Source: Phaeosaccion multiseriatum (Eukaryota > Protista > Ochrophyta, other classes). Taken from it: a stretch of 64,000 nucleotides of DNA. The DNA lies in NCBI GenBank assembly GCA_965112735.1, contig OZ218963.1, positions 62,001 through 126,000 on the forward strand, in the 5' to 3' direction. Below, in pieces: positions 1-63,993 of the stretch (position 1 is the first letter of the stretch; every line of letters begins with the position of its first letter). The position numbers and the translations under genes are program-made. The notes beneath the pieces were generated by a model. The model made no database searches. It was not told where the DNA came from and worked only from the letters and a program-made list of their open reading frames with translations.

Positions 1-5765
<5,765 letters not shown>

Positions 5766-8909: not shown

Positions 8910-11900
8910 CTAGACGTCGAACGCGTCTTTGTCCTTCCAGCTCGCCTCTACCCTGTGGTCGAGCGGCAGGCTGTGCAGCCGCCCCCCCCCCGCCCCAAGC
9001 CACCACAGCTCTGCCCCTCCGTCTGCTGCCATCTTCTGCGGCGCTCGTAGCTCCAGCGACGCGAGCACTGTATCACCAACTGCTGTATCTGGTGGCTGCT
9101 TCAGCGCGGCGGGGATGCCCCCCTTCCCCTTGCCCCCGCTGGCAAAGGAGCACCAGAGACACTCGCGCTGGGGCTGCAGCTGGCCCTGTATCACCACCTC
9201 GCTCACTCGGAAGGTGCACAGCTGCCCGGTGGCCGCCTCGAGCTGCGTGACGTAGAGTGCGTGCCTGTGCTTGAGACGGGTGCGCTTGCGTGCCTTACGG
9301 CTCAGTACGAGGTTGCACCAGAAGGGCCTGAGCACGTGTCCCCCAGTGCCCTCCTCGCCCGGCCCTCCCAGCTTCACCGCGGCCGCTGCCCCCGTCTGGC
9401 CAGTGCTCTCCTGCTTGGCCTCTCCCGCCTCGAACTCTGCCCTGCTGTAGCCCGCATAGGCGCACAATGGGCCCAGGGGGTGCTGTGGCGTCAACGTGTT
9501 GAGGTGTGTCAGGGGTGCGTGGGTGAGTGAGTGTCAGGACAGTGAGTGTCAGGACAGTGAGTGTCAGGACAGTGAGTGTCAGGACAGTGAGTGTCAGGAC
9601 AGTGAGTGTCAGGACAGTGAGTGTCAGGACAGTGAGTGTCAGGACAGTGAGTGTCAGGACAGTGAGTGTCAGGACAGTGAGTGTCAGGACAGTCAGGGAT
9701 GGGGTTGAACTTGAGGGATTAAAAAAGACGACAGTCGCTTGCGAGGTACAGTAGGAGTAGCTTTCAGGTTCCCGCCCCCGGCCCTCCCTCCCTCTCCCCT
9801 CCCTTCACCGCCCGCTGATGCTTCTCTTTCCACCCACCTGATATAGAACCAGGTTGCCCCCCTTTCCCTCCGCCTCCCCCGCTGTCCGAAAGAGGAAGTT
9901 GCGCGAGCCGAGCCAATCTCCGCCCCTCATGGAGTTCTCCCCCCTGAGAAGGTCCTGACACCTCGCCCCTCCCTGCCCTTCCTGTCCTCCCTGCCACCAC
10001 ACCATGCGCTGGAGGGGCCCCGGGGTCTCGCTCCGTGGGCTGGCGCCTGCGTGGATCGCCAACCGTCCATCCGGCCTGAGCACAGCAAAGAGGCAAGCCA
10101 CGCCATCTGTGAACCGGAGCATCTCCCCGGACTTCCACAGCACCTGGCCACCGCCCACTCTGGCGCTGCATGCCTGCTCCTCCCAAAAGTCCCCCCATCC
10201 ACTGCCATCCTCCCCGTAGCTGTGCACCACTAGATTACCATCTCCCTGCAGCCCCACTACCACACTGCGCTCTCCCTCCACCCCCTCCTCCTCCTGCTGC
10301 TGCTGCTGCTGCTGCTGGTGTTGGTCCCCGCCCGCCCCCTCTGCAGATGTCTGCCTTGCTGCCAATCGCTTCGCCTCTGCCGCCGCCGCCGCCGCCGCCT
10401 GCAGATCTTCCTCCGTGGGCACTCTCCACAGCTCCACCGCCTCCGGATCCCTCGGGCCGAGGCCGCGTTTCACCGCAAGCCCGTCTCGAGTGGTCTCCAT
10501 GAACAGCATCGGGCCACCCTCACCACCACCACCAACAGCCACATCAATGGACACGGGAGTGGACAATGGAGGGTACAGTGTGAGTGGCACGCGGTCCCAT
10601 GTGAGGGATGCCTCGTGCATGGCCACCCACTGCCCTTGTTGCAGGAAGGAGAGCACGGGGATGAAGTCGTAGTGCACGCCTGGCATGGAGTTTCCCGCAC
10701 ACTTGCGCAGCCAAGAGCCCTTGTTGAAGTGCTGCACAAAGCTCGTCCACCCCTCCAGGGAGGCCTTTGACTGCAGCTCGTAGAAGGCCTGGCCGCGAGA
10801 GTGGGCAGAGGAGAAGGCGGGGATGCCCAACACTTTCACCTGCACCGGGGAAAAGGGTTGGGTGTTCGCCAGCGCAACATCTGTGAACACGCCCGGCCCG
10901 GTCTTGAGGATGGTCTCGATGTGGTGACACGCGCCCTTTCGCCGGCTGTGAATCTCTCTGTACACATCGGTGGTGTCCTTGATGTTGTCGGCCACGCTCT
11001 CCACCACCTTCCACAGCACGTCGTTGCGGGGGCGCGACGCGAAGGCGTGCAGAGAGAGCGACTTGGGCCTTGCGTAAGCCCACTCCAGAGACTTTGCCTC
11101 GGACTCAAAGTCGCTCTCCAGCCCCACCACGAAGGCATCGGAGGGCGTGTACATACCCCACACAGGCTCCAGCGGCAGCGTGTCCAGGTCCGCATACACC
11201 CCGCCCAAGTGGTACATGAACAGGTAGCGCGCAAAGTCCGCCAGCTCTCCTCCGTTGGCCACGGCGCCAACCACCCCCTCGAATTGGGGGTAGTGCTCCC
11301 CAATGAAGGCAAGGATGCGCTCGTCGTCCAGGAAGGCGTACTCGTGGCACGGGTGCATGGTCATCCACGCCATGGGCCCTCGCAGCGCCTCGAAGCTGTA
11401 GCCGCTCACCAGGCCCGTCTTGCCGCTCTGCAGGATGCGGGGAGGGATGGCGTACTCCGCCAGCCGCCGCCTTTCCTCCTCCGAGCATTGCCCCTCCTGC
11501 AGGCTCCTCGCCAGGCCTTCCATCGTCAGCGCTTGCCCTCGCTCCTGCCCGTCAACCATCGCCACAGCGACGCTCTCCTCCCCCTTGCTCGCTGCTCTGG
11601 GCACGCCGCCCAACCCCCTGTTCACGACCCGCCACGTGCTGTCGTCGAAGCACGAGTTAAATGTGTCCCTTCCCTTGGGCAGCGGGCAGCATGTCAGTGC
11701 CGCAGGAAAGGCATCAATGTAGCGAGCCGGCGGGGTGTGGCTGAGGTCCCTGCTGGGCCTCGGCACGTTGACAAACACGTCGGCCTCGTATGCCACCACA
11801 GAGGAGGGCACCACCACGACTCTGCCCCTCCCAATGTCCCACAAGTCCCTGGCGAGCAGCTCGCACTCCGAAGCCGCGCACTCCACCCCATCCCTCGCCG

Positions 11901-13398
11901 CCCGCAGCCGCAGGGATTCTTGCTGGAACACGTCGGCGTCAATGCTCACCATGCCGTTCCAGCACGAGAACACTTGGAACGGACGGCCCTCTCGCAGCGC
12001 CCGAGCCGAGTCCGCGTGACGGAGGTACGGGGGCTCGTTTGTGAACTTGTGCCCCTCCACGTCCATCCCCACCCAAATGTCATACAGGCGGAAGCCTGCA
12101 CAGCTTTCTCCTTGCGGGCAGTCGGGGTCCTTCCCGATCCAGTCGGTGGAGCAGGCCATGTCGGCCCCGTGCGGGTGCGGGAGCCGGGTTTGGTGCAGCA
12201 GGGGCAGCACGTCCTCTGCACAGAAGAACACGTCGTTGAGGAACAGCACCTGTTGTTGTGGAGACATGCAAAGTAAGCCAGTGAAAGGCTCCTTTAGTGT
12301 CTCTGTCTTTGGTGGCCGGGTAGAGAGACAAGAGTTCATTATCGTCCAGCAGAGCAGAGGAGACGCATGGATCGATCAGCAGGCTCACTAGTCACTTGGT
12401 CATACCTGGTCGTACTGCTGGCTCGACTGGTACAGAGGCAGTAGGGCCTTGTTGCGCATCGCGGCGAGGAAGGGGATGCGGTCCTCCCCAGGCTGCCGGA
12501 CCACAGCAGTGGAGAGCACCACATGCGGTACGTTCATGGCTTGGAGCTGTCTCTCCAAGTGCCGCAGGAGGACGGCCGTATCGTCCGTGCTGCCGCTCTC
12601 GTACACAGACACAAAAACGTTCCCGCCAAGGGGCCCTTCGAGCATGAGCAGCAGCTTCATGAGCTCCCTCTGCCAGGAGGGGAACACGGCGGCGTTGTTG
12701 TGCAGGTTGGCGGCGATGAAGAACATGCCCGAGCGGTACTCGTCAAGCTCCATGTAGCGCCGGCCTCTGAGGGGCGCAAGCTCTGTCAGCGACCGCGCCA
12801 GGCCGTAGGGTGTCCGCGCTCGCGTGGGACAAACATCGCCGGCCTCCTCCTTGTTCGTGCTCGTCTTCTTCCCTGCTGCCTTGGTGGTCCTTGCTGCCTT
12901 GGCTGTCTGAGGCACGCGACTGTCCACGAAGGCGATGCACTCGAGCACCGGCATCCCCAACCCCCTGATGGGCGGGGCCACTTCACCGGCGCCAAGGCCA
13001 GGGCCAGAACTGCCCTGCCCAGTCGCACCCGCCGCAGCTTCCCCCCCTCTGCCGCCCCCGACCGAAAGGCCTGCCCCGTCCTCCCAATACCGCAGACTGT
13101 TTCCTTCCAGCACTGCGCCAGCCGCCGCGAGACTCGCTGGCGCCCTCTGGGGAGGAAGGAGGCATTTGTGGCCCTGTCTCCTGTGAAAGAAGCTGTGCCC
13201 ACCCCAGTCGTATCCATCTTGATACCCTTCGTCGCCCCTGCGCTGCCTCGTCGCCAAACACACCAACACCACCGAGAAGGCCACCGCCGCGGCTCCCACA
13301 ATTCTCAGCAGCACATTCTTCCTGCCGACCTTCCACTTCCCTGCTCGCCTCCGGGGCAGCGACGAGGAGGCGTAGGGGTTGAAGAGATTCGGCTTCAT
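8910..13398 (-). CDS. Type II membrane glycosyltransferase fusion: GT69 (CAP59/CMT1-like) + GT32 (Och1-like, DXD) + bulb-type lectin-like domain(s)
   Basis: Exons 13398-12406, 12249-9838, 9482-8910. N-terminal TM (IVGAAAVAFSVVLVCL). GT69: FFIAANLHNN...FVSVYESGSTD...RIPFLAAMRNKAL...VLFLNDV...YDIWV...FQVFSCWNG...CAASEC. GT32: IPPRILQS...ELADFARYLFMYHLGGVYADLD...TGPGVFT...HFNKGSW. B-lectin-like: LQGDGNLVV, VLWKSG, AVLRPDGRLAI, GNLVLY. Confidence 0.88.
9526..9692. repeat. 15-bp minisatellite (AGTGAGTGTCAGGAC) x11, intronic
   Basis: Identical tandem units in the 3' part of glycosyltransferase intron 9483-9837. Confidence 0.95.
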
Positions 13399-50337: not shown

Positions 50338-51778
50338 AGAGCTAGTGCGACGTTGACAGAAAGTAGAGTACTAAGTGCAACGTCGAAAGAAAGTAGATAG
50401 TGGGACTGTAAGGGTTGTGTCGAAGGAACTCCAGTGCCATCTCGACAAGAAGCAGAGTGAGAGAGCACGAGATGGAAAGAGAGAGGGAGTGTGTGTGTGT
50501 GTGTGTGTGTCGACACACAGACCACATGCCAGTGGTATGTCGGCAACGAGGAGGAGGAGGAGGAGGAGGAGGAGGAGGAGGAGGAGGAGGACGGGGAGGA
50601 GTAGAGAGAGGGCGAGAGAAGAGGGAGGAGGGGTGGAGCAGAGCGTGGCCGGGAGGGGGCGGCAGTGTTTGGCGTGGCTGGCTTAGGTGGGGGAGCAGCG
50701 ATGGCAGTCGACGGCGGCAGACTAGGAGCTTCAAGGAGCCTCTGACAGGCAGTTAGGGACGGACGAGACAGTGTGACGCACGCGGGCACGGATGGGAAAG
50801 AGTGGATGGTTTCCGCGTACGTACCGTAGGCTTGATGTACTCTTGTAGAGAGGGCATTGATACACGGCTGCCGCAAATGGGAGGCAGCTAGTTGCAAAGC
50901 CTCTGGGATATTAAGTAATAAGTCAGTTAAAATAAAAAAAAGAGTGGGCATGAGTGGATCTGCCCTGGGTTATGAAGCTAGTCACCAATCGCTCAGTCTG
51001 TCAGCCACTCAGTCTCGTCTATCCGTCAGTCCGGCAGTCAGACAGTGTTGCAGCGCTTCAGGGCAGTGGATGGCAGTCTATGATGTTAACTGTGTTTTAA
51101 AAAAAGAGTGTGGTTGTACATAGTGTAGCCGTTTCACAGATGCAGAGCCATTAGTCGAGACCGACCATTCGACCATTCACCGGCATCGTCCACTGCCATC
51201 CCGCAATCAATCAGACCATCACTGCTGCCCAGGAGCCATAGAAGATCAAGAAGAAGAGGGAGAAGAAGACAGCCCACCTCAGCTGCTCACCTCAGCTGCC
51301 CACCTCCGCCGATGTCCAATGTGGGGCATGTGAAACACAAGCCTTCTTTTCTTCCTTCCAAACGCAAGCCGGGCTGCCTGTGGATCTCCCAGCTGTGAGT
51401 AGAGCCGATGCTAGCCCATATGCCCACAGCCCATAAACCCCATGGGGTCTAATGGGACAATGGCGCTCGTCCTCTCTCACCCTCCCCCCCTGGAGAATGT
51501 CGATGTCGATGTATTCGATATTGACCGAAAGTGAAAGAGGCCTCTTGCCAGAAACTCGCTTGGGTTGGCCCCACTTCTCCCCCCCCAGGCCTTCTGGGGA
51601 TGCCTCTCTCTCTCTCGCTCGCGTCTGTCTGCCTCTCTTCCCCTCCCTGCCCGCGGGTGCCATCCAGTGCCATCCAGACAGTCAGTAAGTCAGCAACAGG
51701 GGGGAGTTGTACACTTCACACAACTCCTACAAGTAGGTGTGCGTGTGTGTGTGTGTGCAGCATACATAAGTCAATAAT

Positions 51779-54700
51779 TCAGCCGCTGTAGCCCACGTAA
51801 GTGGGTGTGTATGCAGGGGGGCCGCCTCCCACGTTCATGGTATCTGCGCCCCCCTCGCCCTGTGCCCCTGCCCCTGCCCCCCCCTGTACCTCCACAGTCC
51901 CGAACAGCGGCGGAGGGCTTGCCCACACGTTCTCGAACGAAAAGCCCGAGGTCACCCCCTGTGATGTGTTGCCCCCTCCGCCGCCGAAGTTGCTGGGTGC
52001 GAAGGTCCCCGCCCCCCCCCCTCCCGCCCCCCCGCCCGTCGCCTCCCCGTAGCTTGGGAGCGCATCGTCCTGCCCCGTGGATACGGCCGCCCCTCCCGCA
52101 TGCGGGTATACCTTACCATCGCCGCCCATACCGATTGGCTGCTCCATGCCCTGCGGCTGTTGGTTCACCACCACGCCCTGTTGGATTTGCCCCAGCGGCA
52201 CCACACCGAGGGGTTGCTGCCCTTGTGGCTGCTGCGCATATGCCTGCTGCTGCGCGTTGACAAAGTTGGTGCTGAAAGCCTCGGGTAGAGAGGCGCACTC
52301 CACGGGCTGATTCAGCGTCTTCTTGGTCTTGAAGCAGCCGAAGATCCCGTCGGGGATGTTGAGCGAAACTGCCACCACATAGCTCCACACCAAGGGGTCC
52401 GCCTGCCTCTCCTTGCCGCCCATGGCAGCGAGCCTTGCCTCGGCCTCCAACTTGGCTCTCTCTCGGCCCTCCTTGTCTGCCCCGTACATGGCTAGCATAT
52501 GTCGGCTAGGCCCGCCGAAGCCCTCGAAGGAGGGAGGACCCGGGGGCATCATGAACACGGGCTCTTGTCCATCAAACACGGCCTGGGGGAGGTGTCAGGA
52601 CAGGAGGAGTCAGGACAGTGGATGGGTTTCAGCAAAGAGGGCGTCAGCATAGAGGGTGTCAGGACCGGTTATTGTCTGGCGAACACGGCCTGGGGAGTGG
52701 TGAGTGAGTGAGAGATTGAGTGAGTGAGTAAGAAGGAAGTGAATATGTGAGTCATTAATGCGTGAGTGGGAGGTAAGTGAGTGAGCTGCGGAGAAACCTT
52801 CGGTTTTTGATCTTCCGGCATATCGATCTAGGTGAGAGCTCCATTAAACTGCAACTTCAACTCACCGCCGCCTCCCCATCCATGCCTCCACCGAGGAAGA
52901 TCGTCCTCTGCGCGAGGGTGACGGAGTTGCCGTGCGAGTGGCTGCTGTTGTTGGTTTGGAGGCTCATCATGCGAATCAGGCGGAACTCCATCTGTTGATC
53001 AACGAGGGGGTGAGATGTAAGAGAGAGAGAGAGACAGATGGAGAGACCGAGATGAGAGTCTGAGAGGGAGAGAGATGAGGACATGGAGAGTCGGAGAGAG
53101 AGAGAGAGAGAGAGACAGGCCTCGTGCCCATTGGAATGGTCGTGGGCCCCTCGAGGAGAAAGCCAAAGTGATGCTCGTCGCTTCTCCTCCCCTGCGCAAC
53201 AAGCACACGCACGCACACACACACCGCCCTCCAGTGCCATCTTCTCCCCCTGAGTCCCTCCTCCTCCTCGTGCCCCCCCCCCCCCCCATCCACTGCCATC
53301 TGTTGACTTACCGTGGCCCCCTGCGCCAAGTCCTCAGGGATGAGGGTCCTCATTGCGCCCTTCTGCATGAATACCCCTTCGTTGGGCATGTACCTGGGTA
53401 GGCGTATGTCAATGAACAGAATCAGTAAGTCAATGACTAGTGAGGTTCGTGGGCATCGAGATATAAGATGCGATACCCATTCAAGGGAAGGTGGCACAAA
53501 ACGTCTAGAGGTAGTGAGTTGTTTGAAGTGCATTAATGATGGGCCTCGAGATGATAAATTCAGTTAGCCACCGCCTTAACGTTGGTAGGTTGGAAGGGAG
53601 GTAGGCAGACAGGCAGGTTGGCAAACAAGCAGAGATAGGTAGATCGGTGGGCAGGCAGGTAGGTAGGTAGGCAGGTAGGAAGGTAGGCAGGTAGGTAGGT
53701 GGGTAGGCAGGTAGCTAGGTAGGTAGGTAGGTAGGTAGGTAGGTAGGTAGGTAGGTAGGTAGGTAGGCAGGCAGGCAGGTAGGCAGGTACGTAAGCTTCT
53801 TGGTCGCGACACGTTCGTACCCGGATTTGAGCAGCGACACACTGAGGCTCACTTCTCCTCTAGTTACGCACGGACAGGGCATGGAGCAGCAGCAGAAGAT
53901 CAGGCAAGCGGGCACACGCTGCTTCACCTGTTGGTGATACAGGCGGAGGGGGCAGGGAGGGGCTAGTGAGAGGCGACAATACATGCCTGTTCGGCTGTGC
54001 AGTCACTCACACACTCAGCAGGGAGTGTGTCATAAGTCGTCACGATTCAGCGAAGCTCTGCTCTGCCGACGTCTTGGCCAGACTCAGGCTCTCACAGATG
54101 ATGAGCACCTCACAGCCCAGGCACTTCAACGCGCCATCTGTCGTTCTCTCTTGCTCTGTATTTCTCTCTCTCCGTCTCTCCCTCCCTCTCTATGTATCGC
54201 TCTCCCTGCAGTGCCCTCTCTCTATTTCGCCCCCTCTCTCTCTCTCTCTCTTCCCGACATGGCAATGCACTCACTCACCGTAAATGTCTCCTGCGCGATG
54301 GGCGGGGGGATGGGCAAGGAGGGCGAGGGCTGCAGCACGGTGAAGTACGCACGCGTGGAAGGGTTCTTCTTCCATGCTGCGGGGGATGGCAGTAGACGGG
54401 GGGAGGGGCGGCGGTTTCCGAGTAGAGGAGGGGGAGGGGGGGAGGGTGGAGAGATGAGACCAGTGAGGAAGAGTAGCACACGCGGCCTCGACACGCGCAA
54501 AGGCCTGACACCTGGTACCTGACACTTGACGTTGAAAGAGCCCGACACGGGTATTCACTGGTATCTACCGCTCCCTCGCTTTTACCCTCATACCCCACGC
54601 ACCCGATCCTCCCCATCCTCGTCCACTTCCTCGTCGTCCTCCTCATCCTCCCCCTCCTCCTCCTCCTCCTCCTCCTCCTCCTCCTCCTCCTCCTCCTCCT

Positions 54701-56503
54701 CCTCCTCCTCCTCCTCCTCCTCCTCCTCCTCCTCCTCCTCCTCCTCCTCCTCCCCATCCTCGTCCACTTCCTCGTCGTCCTCCTCATCCTCCCCCTTCTC
54801 CTCCTCCTCCTCCTCCTCCTCCTCCTCCTCCCCATCCTCGTCCACTTCCTCGTCGTCCTCCTCATCCTCCCCCTTCTCCTCCTCCTTCCTCCCGTTCACC
54901 CCCCCCCCCTCCTCTTTCCAGATAGCACTCCTACTTGTACTCACAGATGTCGATGAAGCTGTAGACGCTGTACCGCACGTAGCCTGCTGCGTCGGAGCGC
55001 CCCCCCCCCCTCCCACCTGCGCTGGGCCCCCGTCATCATTGTCGTGGTCGTGCTGTCCGTGCCTATCCGACATCTCGATCGTGGAGGGTAGAGTGCTGGA
55101 CAGAGGGAAGGAGAAGGGCATGGTTACGGTGCCCGGTGGAAGCACGAACTCCTCGTCGGGGGGCGGGAAGGCGGTGCCCATCGGCATGGCGCTCGGAGCG
55201 GAGTACACCTGCGGCGGGCGAGGAGAGGAAGGAAAGGGTGGGTGATGCATGGGTTTGTTAGACAAGTATGGCAGACACGCAAGAACGTGCTCTGCTCTGC
55301 TCACAAAGCTCAAAGGAACTTCTTCCTTCCTCCCCGCAGACGAGCAGGCGAGCAACGACATTGTACGTGGGTGGGTGGGTGGGTCAAGGAACAAACAGCA
55401 GCAGGTGGGCACAGAGAGAGAGAGAGAGAGAGGAACAGCACACACAGAGAGAGAGAATGAAACTCGCCTGCACATACACATCATTCTTTCCAATGAGGTC
55501 CGCCTTCCTCAGCCCGGAGGCCCTGATGAACTCGATCCGCAGCTGCCGCTTCGTGGGGGCGCCCATCTCTCCTTGCCCCTGGCTGCCCCCCATCCTGGGC
55601 GAGTGAGGAGGGATGCCCATCCTGGCTTCGTACTCGTCGAGCCATTGCACGTCCACCTCCACCTCTCCCTTAGGGAGGGGCTGCCCCTTGCGGCTGAGCT
55701 GTAGAACGCTCCTCCCCCCTCCCTGCCGCGTGAGCAGGCCCGTGTCGAGCAGCACCTCGCCGAGCAAGTCGTCCTTCTTGCCCCTGCGAGTTGGTGATAC
55801 GGCAGGGGAGGCGACGGAGGGCATCGCGTTAAGCGGCAGACAGAGGGCAGACAGGCAGGACCAGTGGCATACCAAGGAAGGAAGGGAGGGAGGGATAGGC
55901 AGCAGCAGCTGCTCTTGACCGTGACCATCCTCTAGCACACACGCTGCTATCACCCTCCGGCCATGACCATACGCTTCTCACATATCGTAGTCCATGACCC
56001 TGCAGATGAGCGGCTCTCCCTGCCCCGCAGACACCACGAGCACCCCGCGCTTGTCCGAGCTCGGCGTGGCGAAGAAGAAGTCGCTGCCCGCCCCGTCGAT
56101 GACGCTTGTCTTGTTGAGCGGTCCAGCCACGCAGGTCTGGTACTCAGCATACTCCTTGCTGTGCGAGTGGTGCTCCACACGCCGATCGTCGCCCGTCCCG
56201 TGCTCCTCCTGCCAGCGAGAGAACGGAGGATGGAGGGCAGAGCAAAAGGAAAGGGAAAAGAGTCGTGCGCTGAGTCAGGGGCTGTGCATGGGACGAGAGA
56301 GCAAGCCTTGCAACGGAACAACAAACACACAATCGCCCTCTTACCGTCCATCGACAATGCCCTTTGCCCTCAATCTTGAGCTGCACGCCCTTGCAGGTGG
56401 TGTTTGCATTGGTGGTGAGATAGAGGACGCCCTTCACCGTTTCTCCGGCATAGTACGTCTGCCTTTCCAGCTTGATGCGAAAGTCCTTCACGCTCAGATT
56501 CAT
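51779..56503 (-). CDS. Alpha-arrestin (arrestin N + C) with inserted C2-like domain and PY motifs, copy A; 1-nt frameshift in a G homopolymer as assembled
   Basis: Exons 56503-56345, 56208-55982, 55783-55468, 55208-54945, 54376-54279, 53927-53821, 53393-53312, 52991-52866, 52582-51779. Arrestin N: TYYAGETVKGVLYL...GVQLKIEGKG..W...LPPG..MPFSFPLSSTLPST...GYVRYSV. Arrestin C: VSLSVSLLKSGYMPNE. Tail LPSY and PPAY. Alternative upstream ATG at 56584. Confidence 0.85.
54600..54890. repeat. (TCC)n-rich expansion in intron of arrestin copy A only
   Basis: Absent at the equivalent position (about 62283-62300) of copy B. Confidence 0.85.
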
Positions 56504-59426: not shown

Positions 59427-62400
59427 TCAGCCGCTGTAGCCCACGTAAGTGGGTGTGTATGCAGGGGGGCCGCCTCCCACGTTCATGGTATCTGCGCCCC
59501 CCTCGCCCTGTGCCCCTGCCCCTGCCCCCCCCTGTACCTCCACAGTCCCGAACAGCGGCGGAGGGCTTGCCCACACGTTCTCGAACGAAAAGCCCGAGGT
59601 CACCCCCTGTGATGTGTTGCCCCCTCCGCCGCCGAAGTTGCTGGGTGCGAAGGTCCCCGCCCCCCCCCCTCCCGCCCCCCCGCCCGTCGCCTCCCCGTAG
59701 CTTGGGAGCGCATCGTCCTGCACGGCCGCCCCTCCTGCGTGCGCGGGGTACAGTTTCCCATCGTCGCCCATACCGATTGGCTGCTCCATGCCCTGCGGCT
59801 GTTGGTTCACCACCACGCCCTGTTGGATTTGCCCCAGCGGCACCACACCGAGGGGTTGCTGCCCTTGTGGCTGCTGCGCATATGCCTGCTGCTGCGCGTT
59901 GACAAAGTTGGTGCTGAAAGCCTCGGGTAGAGAGGCGCAATCCACGGGCTGATGCAGCGTCTTCTTGGTGTGGAAGCAGCCGAAGATCCCATCGGGGATG
60001 ACGAGCGAAACTGCCACCACATAGCTCCACACCAAGGGGTCCGCCTGCTTCTCCTTGCCGCCCATGGCAGCGAGCCTTGCCGCGGCCTCCAACTTGGCTC
60101 TCTCTCGGCCCTCCTTGTCTGCCCAGTACATGGCTAGCATATGTGGGCTGGGCTCGCCGAAGCCCTAGAAGGAGGGAGGACCCGGGGGCATCATGAACAC
60201 GGGCTCTTGTCCATCAAACACGGCCTGGGGGAGGTGTCAGGACAGGAGGAGTCAGGACAGTGGATGGGTTTGGGTAAAGAGGGTGTGACGACAGAGGGTG
60301 TCAGGACCGGTTGTTGCCTGGCGAACACGGCCTGGGGAGTGGTGAGTGAGTGAGAGAGTGAGTGAGAAGGTAAGTGAGTGAGTGAGTGAGTGAGTGAGTG
60401 AGTGAGTGAGTGAGAGAGTTTGTGAGTAGTAAGTGAATGGGTGAATCATTGAGTGAGTGGGGGAGAGAGTGAGAGAGTGAGGGAGTAAGTGAGTACTAAG
60501 TGAGTGAGTGGCAGAGAAACATTCGGTTTTTGATCTTCCGGCATATCGACCTAGGTGAGAGCTCCATTAAACTGCAACTTCAACTCACCGCCGCCTCCCC
60601 ATCCATGCCTCCGCCGAGGGAGATCGCCCTCTTTGCGAGGATGACGGAATTGCCACGCGAGTGCATGCCGCTGTTGGTTTGGAGGCTGATGGTGCGGATT
60701 AAGCTGAACCCCATCTATTGATCAACGAGGGGGTGAGATGTAAGAGAGAGAGGGAGAGAGGGAGGCGGAGAGAGAGAGACAGATGGAGAGACCGAGATGA
60801 GAGTCTGAGAGGGAGAGAGATGAGGACATGGAGAGTCGGAGAGAGAGAGAGAGAGAGACAGGCCTCGTGCCCATTGGAATGGTCGTGGGCCCCGCGAGGA
60901 GAAAGCCAAAGTGATGCTCGTCGCTTCTCCTCCCCTGCGCAACAAGCACACGCACGCACACACACACCGCCCTCCAGTGCCATCTTCTCCCCCTGAGTCC
61001 CTCCTCCTCGTGCCCCCCCCCCCATCCACCGCCATCTGTTGACCTACCGTGGCCCCCTGCGCCAAGTCCTCAGGGATGAGGGTCCTCATTGCGCCCTTCT
61101 GCATGAACACCCCTTCGTTGGGCATGTACCTGGGTAGGCATACATGTCAATGAATAGAATCAGTAAGTCAGTGACTAGGGAGGTTCGTGGGCATCGAGAT
61201 ATAAGATGCGATACCCATTCAAGGGAAGGTGGCACAAAACGTCTAGAGGTAGTGAGTTGTTTGAAGTGCATGAATGATGAGCCTCGAGCTAGGTAGGCAG
61301 GCAGGCAGGTAGGTAGGTAGGTAGATAGGTACGTAAGCTTTTTGGTTGCGACACGTTCGTACCCGGATTTGAGCAGCGACATACTGAAGCTCACTTCTCC
61401 TCTTGTTACGCACGGGCAGGGCATGGAGCAGCAGCAGAAGATCAGGCAAGCGGGCACACGCTGCTTCAGCTGTTGGTGATACAGGCGGATAAGGCAGGGA
61501 CGGGCGAGTGAGAGGCGATAATAACATGCCTGTTCGGCTGTGCAGTCACTCACGCGCTCAGCAGGAAGCGTGTCATAAGTCGTCACGATTTAGCGAAGCT
61601 CTGCTCTGCTGTCGTCTTGGCCAGGCTCAGGCTCAGGCTCTCACAGATGATGCTGCAGCCAGGAGCAGGGCAGCACCTCACAGCCCAGGCACTTCAAAGC
61701 GCCCTCTCTCTGTCGTTCTCTGTCGCTCTGTATTTCTCTCTCTCTGTCTCTCCCTCCCTCTCTATGTATCGCTCTCCCTGCCCCTCTCTCTCTATGTCGC
61801 TCTCTCTCTCCGCCCCTCTCTGCACATCACTCTCACTTTCTCTCCCCCCCTCTCTATACATAGCTCTCTCTCTCTCTCCATCTCTCTCTATACATAGCTC
61901 TCTCTATATGTCGCCCCCCCTCTCTCTCTTCCTGACATGGCAATGTACTCACTCACCGTAAACGTCTTCTGCGCGATGGGCGGGGGGATGGGCAAGGAGG
62001 GCGAGGGCTGCAGCACGGTGAAGTACGCACGCGTGGAAGGGTTCTTCTTCCATGCTGCGGGGGATGGCAGTAGACGGGGGAAGGGGCGGCGGTTTCCGAG
62101 TAGAGGAGGGGGAGGGGGGGGGAGTGGAGAGATGAGACGAGTGAGGAAGAGTAGCACACGCGGCCGCGACACGCGCAAAGGCCTGACACCTGGTATCTGA
62201 CACTTCACCTTGACAGAGCCCGACACGGGCATTCACTGGTATCTACCGCTCCCTCGCTTTTACCCTCATACCCCACGCACCCGATCCTCCTCCTCCTTCC
62301 TCCCATTCACCCTCCCCCTCTCCTCTCTCCCGGACAGCACTCCTACTTGTACTCACAGATGTCGATGAAGCTGTAGACGCTGTACCGCACGTAGCCTACT

Positions 62401-62825
62401 GTATCGTTGCGTCCCCCCCCCCCGCCCACCTGCTCTTGTCCCCTGTCATCATGGAGGGGGAGGAGCTGCTCCTGGCCACGCCTGAACTCGATCGTGGAGG
62501 GCAGAGTGCTCGACAGAGGGAAGGAGAAGGGCATGGTAATAGTTCCCGCTGGCAGCACAAATCTCTCGTTGGGGGGCGGGAAGGCGGTGGTCAGCGGCAT
62601 ATCGGCGCTCGGAGCGGAGTACACCTGCGAGGGAGGAGAGGAAGGAAAGGGTGGGTGATGCATGGGTTTGTTAGACAAGTATGGCAGACACCCAAGCACG
62701 TGCTCTGCTCTGCTCTGCTCACAAAGGTCAAGGAACTTCTTCCTTCCTCCCCGCAGACGAGCAGGCGAGCAACGACATTGCACGTGGGTGGGTGGGTGGG
62801 TCAAGGAACAAACAGCAGCAGGTGG

Positions 62826-62862
<37 letters not shown>

Positions 62863-63993
62863 CAGCACACAGAGAGAGAGAATACAACTCGCCTGCATAT
62901 ACACATCATTCTTTCCCCTGAGATCCGCCCACGGCAGCCCCGAGACCCTGATGAACTCGATCCGCAGCTGCCGCTTCGTGGGGGCGCCCATCTCTCCTTG
63001 CCCCTGGCTGCCCCCCATCCTGGGCGAGTGAGGAGGGATGCCCATCCTGGCTTCGTACTCGTCGAGCCATTGCACGTCCACCTCCACCTCTCCCTTAGGG
63101 AGGGGCAGCCCGTTGCGGCTGAGCTGTAGAACGCTCCCCCTTCCTCCCTGCCGCGTGAGCAGGCCCGTGTCGAGGAGCACCTCACCGAGCAAGTCGTCCT
63201 TCTTGCCCCTGCGAGTTGGTGATACGGCAGGGGCGGCGACGGAGGGCATCGCGTTAAGCGGCAGACAGAGGGCAGACAGGCAGGACCAGTGGTATACCAA
63301 GGAAGGAAGGAAGGAAGGAAGGGAGGGAGGGAGGGAGGGAGGGAGGGATATTAGGCAGCAGCGCTCTTGACCGTGACCATCCTCTAGCACACACGCTGCC
63401 ATCAGCCTCCTCCCATGCCTATACGCTGCTCACATATCGTAGTCCATGACCCTGCAGATGAGCGGCACTCCCAGCTCCGTAGACACCACGAGCACCCCGC
63501 GCTTGTCCGAGCTCGGCGTGGCGAAGAAGAAGTCGCTGCCCGCCTCCTCGATGACGCTTGTCTTGTTGAGCGGTCCAGCCACGCAGGTCTGGTACTCCGC
63601 ATACTCCTTGCTGTGCGAGTGGTGCACGAAACGCCGCTTCGTCCCCTTCTCGCCCGTCTCTTGCACCACCTCCTGCCAGCGAGATAAAGGAGAATGGAGA
63701 GGGGGAGAGGAAGAAGAAAAGAGGAAGGAAAAAGAGGAAAAGGAAAAGGAAAAGAGTGGTGCGCTGAGGGGATGTGCATGGGACGAGAGAACAAGCCTTG
63801 CAACGAAACAACAAACTCACAATCGCCCTCTTACCGTCCATCTGCAATGCCCTTTGCCCTCAATCTTGAGCTGCACGCCCTTGCAGGTGGTGTTTGCGAT
63901 GGTGGTGAGATGGAGGACGCCCTTCACCGTCTCTCCGGCATAGTATGTATACCTCTCCAGCATGATGCGAAAGTCTATCACGCTCATATTCAT
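59427..63993 (-). pseudogene. Alpha-arrestin with inserted C2-like domain, copy B; premature TAG in last exon
   Basis: Exons 63993-63835, 63672-63434, 63208-62893, 62624-62357, 62054-61957, 61469-61363, 61129-61048, 60714-60589, 60224-59427. Codon GAG (Glu) of copy A is TAG at 60165-60167. Confidence 0.75.

Follow-up and report, generated by a model that had tools for sequence, protein, structure and literature searches.

C2 domains are among the commonest membrane-targeting modules, and textbooks give two strand topologies for them. The passages on topology in PMC10369986, citing Nalefski and Falke 1996, describe only these two, topology II with the order beta1 to beta8 and topology I, in which beta8 comes first and is followed by beta1 to beta7. 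Alpha-arrestins, represented by human ARRDC3 and TXNIP, Caenorhabditis elegans ARRD-6 and the yeast ARTs, are composed of an Arrestin_N and an Arrestin_C lobe. Both kinds of domain meet in the Dictyostelium proteins AdcB and AdcC, whose C2 domain is N-terminal and shows the canonical order. In the description of these arrestin-domain proteins in PMC3001460, C2 is found beside the arrestin core together with a SAM domain. The locus analyzed here is located on the minus strand of a 64-kb stretch of DNA from the ochrophyte Phaeosaccion multiseriatum (assembly GCA_965112735.1, contig OZ218963.1, positions 62,001 to 126,000), which is called the window in the following. Contrary to AdcB and AdcC, where C2 is a separate domain, the C2 domain of this arrestin-C2 protein is nested in the N-lobe and permuted, and Pfam detected a SAM domain neither in the protein of the window nor in the homologues. 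AdcB and AdcC may be regarded as its closest functional analogues.

The window contains eukaryotic, intron-containing sequence with a GC content of 60%. Two tandem segmental duplicates of approximately 7.5 kb each were identified, each harboring one nine-exon alpha-arrestin gene, copy A (51778..56503) and copy B (59427..63993). The best explanation of these genes, to which we assign a probability of roughly 0.8, is that a circularly permuted C2 domain of the PKC/synaptotagmin type is nested in the N-lobe of an alpha-arrestin that probably serves as a Ca2+-switched membrane adaptor. The two parent families are well known; what is new is that C2 adopts a third topology and is nested in another domain. 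The first-pass annotation of the window knew of no permuted internal insertion among the C2-containing arrestins, and no description of a permuted C2 domain or of a C2 domain inside an arrestin was found in open-access literature text.

Strand order of the C2 insert

The inserts of both copies were compared with a canonical-C2 profile built from 85 near-full-length canonical C2 domains, which had been drawn from unrelated hits. In its native order, the copy A insert gave two partial matches, one with profile positions 52-116 at residues 24-91, the other with positions 2-30 at residues 126-154. Moving the last segment to the front in silico resulted in a single match over positions 2-116 and raised the best-domain score from 29.4 to 59.6 bits (E 1e-18). 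The same was true for copy B, where two reversed partial matches (18.1 and 16.7 bits) were replaced by one match of 43.7 bits. The de-permuted order scored higher than the native one in 68 of 68 sequences, the mean best-domain scores being 48.3 and 24.0 bits, respectively. When every rotation was scanned, the maximum was obtained with the chain start in the linker just before LRIEFIR; opening the chain anywhere in this linker scored best, and the native order was near the lowest of all rotations. As a family-membership score, the copy A insert in native order yielded 51.4 bits against the canonical-C2 profile. The insert shares homology with C2 domains of the PKC/synaptotagmin type and possesses the order beta3-beta8, linker, beta1-beta2 (topology-II numbering), which differs from topology I as well as from topology II. 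The reversed order of the C2 parts is far beyond chance. That the strand order lies outside both types had been claimed from the spliced protein alone, and the two reversed partial matches that become one upon de-permutation bear this out.

Independent of this profile, nine family members were analyzed by Pfam. Arrestin_N was detected in all nine (in two stretches in seven of them), Arrestin_C in seven. The C2 profile (PF00168) was likewise found in 9/9, in seven proteins with scores of 22.4-32.2 bits at a gathering cut-off of 22. Its halves were reversed, profile positions ~57-100 matching residues ~107-153 and positions 2-34 matching residues ~196-230, so that the two partial PF00168 matches in reversed order and nested in Arrestin_N, which the first-pass annotation had predicted, are indeed seen on full-length homologues. 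Searches of PDB sequences with a profile of the insert revealed tandem C2A-C2B synaptotagmins as best matches, with a colinear alignment across the C2A-to-C2B junction, while single C2 chains were matched in reversed order. Taken together, these two results form the pattern by which circular permutants are classically recognized. The segments add up to exactly one full set of eight strands, with none lacking and none doubled.

The insert comprises about 155 residues and splits the Arrestin_N lobe. It extends over 55203-56124 in copy A and, as judged from the alignment and the canonical-C2 profile, over 62619..63576 in copy B (GPLNKTSVIEE...NDVYMQVY), on the minus strand in both cases; boundaries proposed before (55200-56115 and 62619-63566) agree with these to within some 10 nt. 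In copy A, segment I (GPLNKTSV...GEVEVDVQW; 55642..56124) contains beta3'-beta8' and matches canonical-C2 profile positions 52-116; its equivalent in homologues matches Pfam C2 positions 57-100. It is followed by the linker LDEYEARMGIPPHSPRMGGSQGQGEMGAPTKRQ (55543..55641), which was delimited by the rotation scan, connects the old C-terminus (beta8') with the old N-terminus (beta1') and varies in length in the family alignment. Segment II (LRIEFIRASGLRKADLIGKNDVYVQ|VY; 55203..55542) contains beta1'-beta2' and corresponds to positions 2-27 of Pfam C2 and 2-30 of the canonical-C2 profile. Two introns interrupt the insert, at identical places in copies A and B. In copy A, intron 2 (55981-55784) splits segment I inside the loop-3 motif VMDYD|MGKKDD, and intron 3 (55467-55209) falls within segment II. 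In exon 2, the arrestin strand ...HHSHSKEYAEYQTCVA is followed by beta3'-beta5', and exon 3 contains beta6'-beta8', the linker and beta1'-beta2' without interruption. Since exon 3 alone holds strands from both ends of a canonical domain and the linker between them, the strand order is not a splicing artefact.

The peptides on which the first-pass annotation had based its claim were reproduced exactly by the spliced translation, on the minus strand and at the places given for them: ...HHSHSKEYAEYQTCVAGPLNKTSVIDGAGSDFFFATPSSDKRGVLVVSAGQGEPLICRVMDYD in exon 2 (56208-55982), M/GKKDDLLGEVLL...GEVEVDVQW-linker-LRIEFIRASGLRKADLIGKNDVYVQ in the single uninterrupted exon 3 (55783-55468), and VYSAPSA...EFVLPPGTVTMPFSFPL in exon 4 (55208-54945). 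One assignment has to be revised. The 'FxF' strand of C2, formerly equated with DFFF, more likely corresponds to GVLVVS, as indicated by the strands of the AF2 model and the profile alignment.

The five canonical Asp residues of Ca2+-binding C2 domains are present in both copies, as had been stated before, and align to the loop motifs of synaptotagmin. In copy A, the putative ligands are D224 and D230 in loop 1 (RKA-D, KN-D; codons 55500-55498 and 55482-55480) and D126, D128 and D134 in loop 3 (M-D-Y-D, KKD-D-LLG; codons 55992-55990, 55986-55984 and 55770-55768), the codons spanning 55480..55992 on the minus strand; copy B possesses equivalents. Among 66 family members, Asp occurs at the five positions in 56 (Glu in six more), 61, 62, 63 and 61 sequences, i.e. 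in 85-95%. A Ca2+ site composed of these residues would draw loop 1 from the last segment and loop 3 from the first. With the motifs xADxxGxND in loop 1 and MDYDxGKKDDLLGE in loop 3, and with profile homology over all eight strands, the insert resembles PKC/synaptotagmin C2 domains (PF00168), and it may bind Ca2+ and lipids. It differs from them by the permuted order and by being nested in another domain instead of free-standing.

The arrestin host and its family

The first half of the arrestin N-lobe of copy A (56125..56503, minus strand; Pfam and flank profile) is encoded by exon 1 together with the first part of exon 2, as far as ...YQTCVA. Exon 1 scored 30.9 bits with Pfam Arrestin_N (cut-off 24.9) over profile positions 5-48. 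The second half (SAPSA...EFVLPPGTVTMPFSFPL...GYVRYSVYSFIDI; 54945..55202, minus strand) was recognized by the C-flank profile and by a weak Arrestin_N match of exon 4 to positions 84-112. In homologues colinear with the window protein, both the Arrestin_N and the Arrestin_C lobe were matched. The last exon of copy A gave no match to a Pfam domain and encodes a Gln/Gly-rich C-terminal tail (51803..52060, minus strand, by translation) with LPSY in the region 52060-52043 and PPAY in the region 51820-51803. LPSY and PPAY, which belong to the PPxY/LPxY motifs known as docking sites of WW-domain ubiquitin ligases, occur in the tails of both copies, and the homologue P0119 carries PPPY. The N-lobe, the C-lobe and this tail support the assignment of the host protein to the alpha-arrestins, in agreement with the first-pass annotation; structurally it is closest to the N-lobes of ARRDC3 and TXNIP, by sequence to ARRD-6.

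Structures were modelled on P0119, the closest homologue, which is colinear with copy B at 31-34% identity, using a 66-sequence family alignment. AF2 gave a pLDDT of 93.6 and a pTM of 0.88 for the N-lobe with the insert, and 90.1 and 0.85 for the insert alone. The model of the insert contains eight main strands at positions homologous to beta3'-beta8' and beta1'-beta2', i.e. an eight-strand all-beta domain is predicted; homology and the confidence of the model suggest that these strands form a closed sandwich. Foldseek comparisons of the N-lobe plus insert with the PDB retrieved the N-lobes of ARRDC3, TXNIP and C. elegans ARRD-6 (E 1e-7, TM-score on the target 0.65-0.77). In these alignments about 290 query columns faced targets of 149 residues, from which it can be concluded that the arrestin fold closes around a large insertion.

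The insertion point was located by family profiles of the flanks. The N-flank profile matched residues 31-104 of ARRD-6 (E 1e-12) and 20-91 of ARRDC3 (E 2e-7), the C-flank profile residues 115-173 of ARRD-6 (E 1e-3) and, weakly, 104-159 of ARRDC3. The C2 domain is thus inserted between ARRD-6 residues 104 and 115, where the family has 135-160 residues and ordinary alpha-arrestins have about 10. The segment right after the insert aligned weakly (E ~0.04) to residues 100-150 of beta-arrestin-1, a region spanning helix I. The N-lobe of alpha-arrestins lacks helix I, unlike that of visual and beta-arrestins, and DSSP assigned no helix to the arrestin part of the P0119 model. The weak alignment to beta-arrestin-1 hints that C2 might have been placed after the long beta-hairpin, where helix I would lie or immediately ahead of it.

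Exon 3 was searched against 1.84 billion representative proteins. Proteins of 270-723 residues were retrieved, with a colinear end-to-end match at residues ~126-225. Two homologue searches yielded overlapping sets of 76 and 65 proteins, in total about 100 colinear homologues, and all homologues found carry precomputed Arrestin_N and/or Arrestin_C and/or C2 assignments; their source annotation is arrestin-like only. The family includes diatoms (Cylindrotheca closterium, Fistulifera solaris), Triparma laevis and Phaeomonas parva as well as the green algae Tetraselmis chuii and Cymbomonas tetramitiformis. The full-length protein of the window itself was not among the database proteins in these searches. 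At positions that are near-invariant in the family (at least 90% conserved), the window copies retain 38 of 46 residues. Many diatom members (P0015, P0019, P0041, P0048) end in DUF4476, whereas the window protein and P0119 carry PPxY-type motifs, which implies that the output module differs between sub-clades. In the family tree, the proteins attributed to Tetraselmis (P0095) and Cymbomonas (P0115) nest among sequences of ochrophytes, diatoms included. This placement could be due to gene transfer, to contaminated transcriptomes or to an older origin.

The top matches of the all-library search, P0001, P0003 and P0005 (E to 5e-31, up to 19 stretches), were discarded as spurious, being caused by repeat bias at 'LSRKGQPLPKGE'. 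They are very long proteins rich in K, L, E and P, composed of repeats with a unit of ~35-70 residues ('...GLPLPEG(K/R)T.SEK.LI.K...'). No credible Pfam domain was found in them, and they nonetheless outscored true homologues.

Gene models, alternative readings and surroundings

The gene model of copy A was built by hand on the basis of splice sites, reading frames, colinear alignment with family proteins and tblastn of copy B. Its exons are located at 56503-56345, 56208-55982, 55783-55468, 55208-54945, 54376-54279, 53927-53821, 53393-53312, 52991-52866 and 52582-51778 (minus strand). The exons of copy B were mapped from copy A via the alignment (63993-63835, 63672-63434, 63208-62893, 62624-62357, 62054-61957, 61469-61363, 61129-61048, 60714-60589 and 60224-59427, minus strand). 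All splice dinucleotides are kept between the copies. Intron 3 is of the GC-AG type (CAG|GCGAGT...CAG) in both (55467-55209 in A, 62892-62625 in B). Its GC donor yields NDVYVQ|VY and is supported by the homologues, which read NDVYVQ(A/V)Y, an invariant motif of the family. An alternative GT donor (GAT|GTGTAT) was rejected since it would remove the invariant VYVQ. For exon 6, the donor …CTTAC|GT was replaced by …TCCGG|GT, which recovers the 'GYxPxE' motif of the arrestin C-lobe. The two copies are 83-99% identical, with introns as alike as exons, and are recent tandem duplicates; tblastn with copy B revealed no third copy in the window.

Two introns differ markedly in length between the copies. 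Intron 4 measures 568 nt in copy A and 302 nt in copy B, a difference caused by a long (GAG)n/(CTC)n microsatellite in which 'GAGGATGAGGAGGACGACGAGGAAGTGGACGAGGATGGG' units are interspersed (54600-54900 in copy A) and which gives rise to spurious poly-Glu and poly-Ser reading frames on both strands. Intron 6 (427 nt in A, 233 nt in B) contains tetranucleotide (TACC/CTAC)n repeats (53640-53800 in A, 61290-61345 in B), which are far longer in copy A.

Several observations, of which some concern the C2 assignment and others the integrity of the copies, weigh against the interpretation of the locus as a nested, permuted C2 domain in a working arrestin. When the exon pieces were analyzed separately by Pfam, the C2 match in the terminal part of exon 3 (profile 2-27) reached 12.4 bits, below the cut-off of 22. 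Identity between the window protein and the family amounts to only about 30%, and in the tree the protein lies on a long branch next to environmental sequences. In Foldseek searches of the PDB, the isolated insert model had no significant match; a single C2 domain (9zk1_C) was listed with an E value of 0.03 and a TM-score of 0.21. With regard to the structural check suggested by the first-pass annotation, a confident AF2 model with eight main strands stands beside the lack of a significant match in this comparison. This miss is probably due to the sensitivity of the 3Di alphabet and of sequential alignment to chain order. It would also suit a different explanation, according to which the insert is a degenerate spacer whose C2-like pieces do not assemble into one domain, the first being left over from the C-terminal three quarters of a C2 domain and the second from the N-terminal hairpin of another C2 domain that followed it, and the colinear match across the C2A-to-C2B junction of synaptotagmins points in the same direction. 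This is very unlikely, as the prediction for the insert alone is a single compact unit (pTM 0.85, pLDDT 90), both pieces are strongly conserved across a wide family and sum to one complete eight-strand set, and the five Asp are kept at a site that needs both pieces. Even less probable, to a degree that it can practically be neglected, is an error of assembly or gene modelling that conceals a transcript with canonical order or additional exons. The hand-built model, derived from genomic sequence, and the non-canonical donor of intron 3 might arouse such a suspicion; however, beta6'-beta8', the linker and beta1'-beta2' share one exon, beta3'-beta5' follow an arrestin strand in exon 2, and copies A and B agree. 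Moreover, several family members are complete MMETSP transcripts and P0119 is an uninterrupted, intron-free reading frame on a JGI contig (L001) with the same segment order, which demonstrates that the order is not an artefact of the gene models. A nested C2 domain may also be folded and act independently of Ca2+, as a constitutive lipid- or protein-binding module. Many C2 domains are of this kind (PMC10369986), and loop 1 is altered from RKADLIG in copy A to PWADLRG in copy B. We consider this rather unlikely, since all five Asp are found in both copies and in 85-95% of the family members, while in Ca2+-independent C2 domains some of the five Asp are usually missing (PMC10369986).

Of the alternatives weighed here, the least improbable, though still one we hold to be doubtful, is that the architecture is real in the family and at least one of the window copies is a decaying pseudogene. 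Copy A is 1 nt short compared to copy B at a poly-G run (55000..55013, minus strand), which causes a frameshift before GYVRYSVYSFIDI. Copy B has an in-frame TAG (60165..60167, minus strand) at codon 485 (...PPGPPSF*GFG), upstream of the last strands of the arrestin C-lobe, at a position where GAG is present in copy A. A pairwise comparison of the copies gave a dN/dS of 0.80 for the C2 part, compatible with relaxed constraint, and decay would also fit the long branch and an exon identity that is about the same as the intron identity. On the other hand, the frameshift resides in exon 4 in a homopolymer of 11-12 bases, a typical site of assembly errors, and within a variable, lineage-specific loop; the dN/dS values of the arrestin exons are low (0.29 for exon 1 and 0.37 for exons 5-8), and both copies have kept the 38 near-invariant residues and all splice sites. 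A mini-intron spanning the frameshift was rejected, as the candidate measures only 30 nt and the frame is not recovered by any GT..AG pair. The indel in copy A may be an assembly error, an explanation harder to apply to the TAG in copy B. It is uncertain whether copies A and B, each with one apparent lesion, are functional. The conclusion at the level of the family, a permuted C2 domain nested in an alpha-arrestin, is unaffected by this question.

Elsewhere in the window, further coding regions were noticed on the minus strand. A long exon at 9805-12339 encodes a fusion of a CAP59-type mannosyltransferase (PF11735) with Gly_transf_sug (PF04488), whose best named relative stems from the green alga Edaphochlamys debaryana (36% identity). 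Between 24963 and 31481, a GHMP-kinase N domain and a fucose pyrophosphorylase domain are encoded by reading frames that, taken together, resemble a bifunctional fucokinase/GDP-fucose pyrophosphorylase gene. The reading frame at 725-4069 comprises 1114 residues and had no Pfam match.

Possible function, origin and significance

The Ca2+-binding loops of a canonical C2 domain are on one face, the beta2-beta3 connection and the two chain termini on the opposite one. A chain opened at the beta2-beta3 connection, with beta8 and beta1 joined by a linker, would form a domain able to insert via its bottom face into a loop of a host protein. In the arrestin-C2 protein, the chain would enter the C2 domain at beta3, run to beta8, cross a flexible linker of ~10-35 residues, end with beta1, loop 1 and beta2, and re-enter the arrestin fold. 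From the position of the beta2-beta3 connection opposite the Ca2+ loops it can be inferred that C2 is tethered by its bottom and that loops 1 and 3 with the five Asp face outward. According to the most likely mechanism, a rise of cytosolic Ca2+ would load these loops, so that the arrestin docks on anionic membranes. There, the arrestin core could bind cargo and the PPxY/LPxY tail could recruit a NEDD4-type ubiquitin ligase, as in other alpha-arrestins.

Regarding the origin of the permuted unit, excision out of register from a tandem C2 array is most likely, as suggested by the insert profile, which aligns with the C-terminal portion of C2A and on through the initial strands of C2B. Unlike tandem C2A-C2B proteins such as the synaptotagmins, the arrestin-C2 protein possesses one eight-strand set, without a transmembrane anchor or a second C2 domain. 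A more far-reaching proposal, on which we would place somewhat better than even odds, is that a third natural permutation of C2, so far undescribed, was excised from a tandem array, became fixed in an alpha-arrestin at the site of helix I as a Ca2+ switch that recruits a ubiquitin-ligase adaptor to membranes and has been kept across ochrophyte and prasinophyte algae.

A conserved third permutation would widen the known plasticity of the C2 fold and provide a natural example of the route to permutation by tandem duplication followed by out-of-register excision. Because this C2 domain is missed or under-scored by annotation pipelines, the family may also serve as a test case for permutation-aware annotation. 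Ca2+ transients are prominent in the stress and nutrient signalling of diatoms. The family is a candidate for a link between such transients and the turnover of transporters or receptors, as a C2 sensor inside the arrestin N-lobe might couple the two directly.

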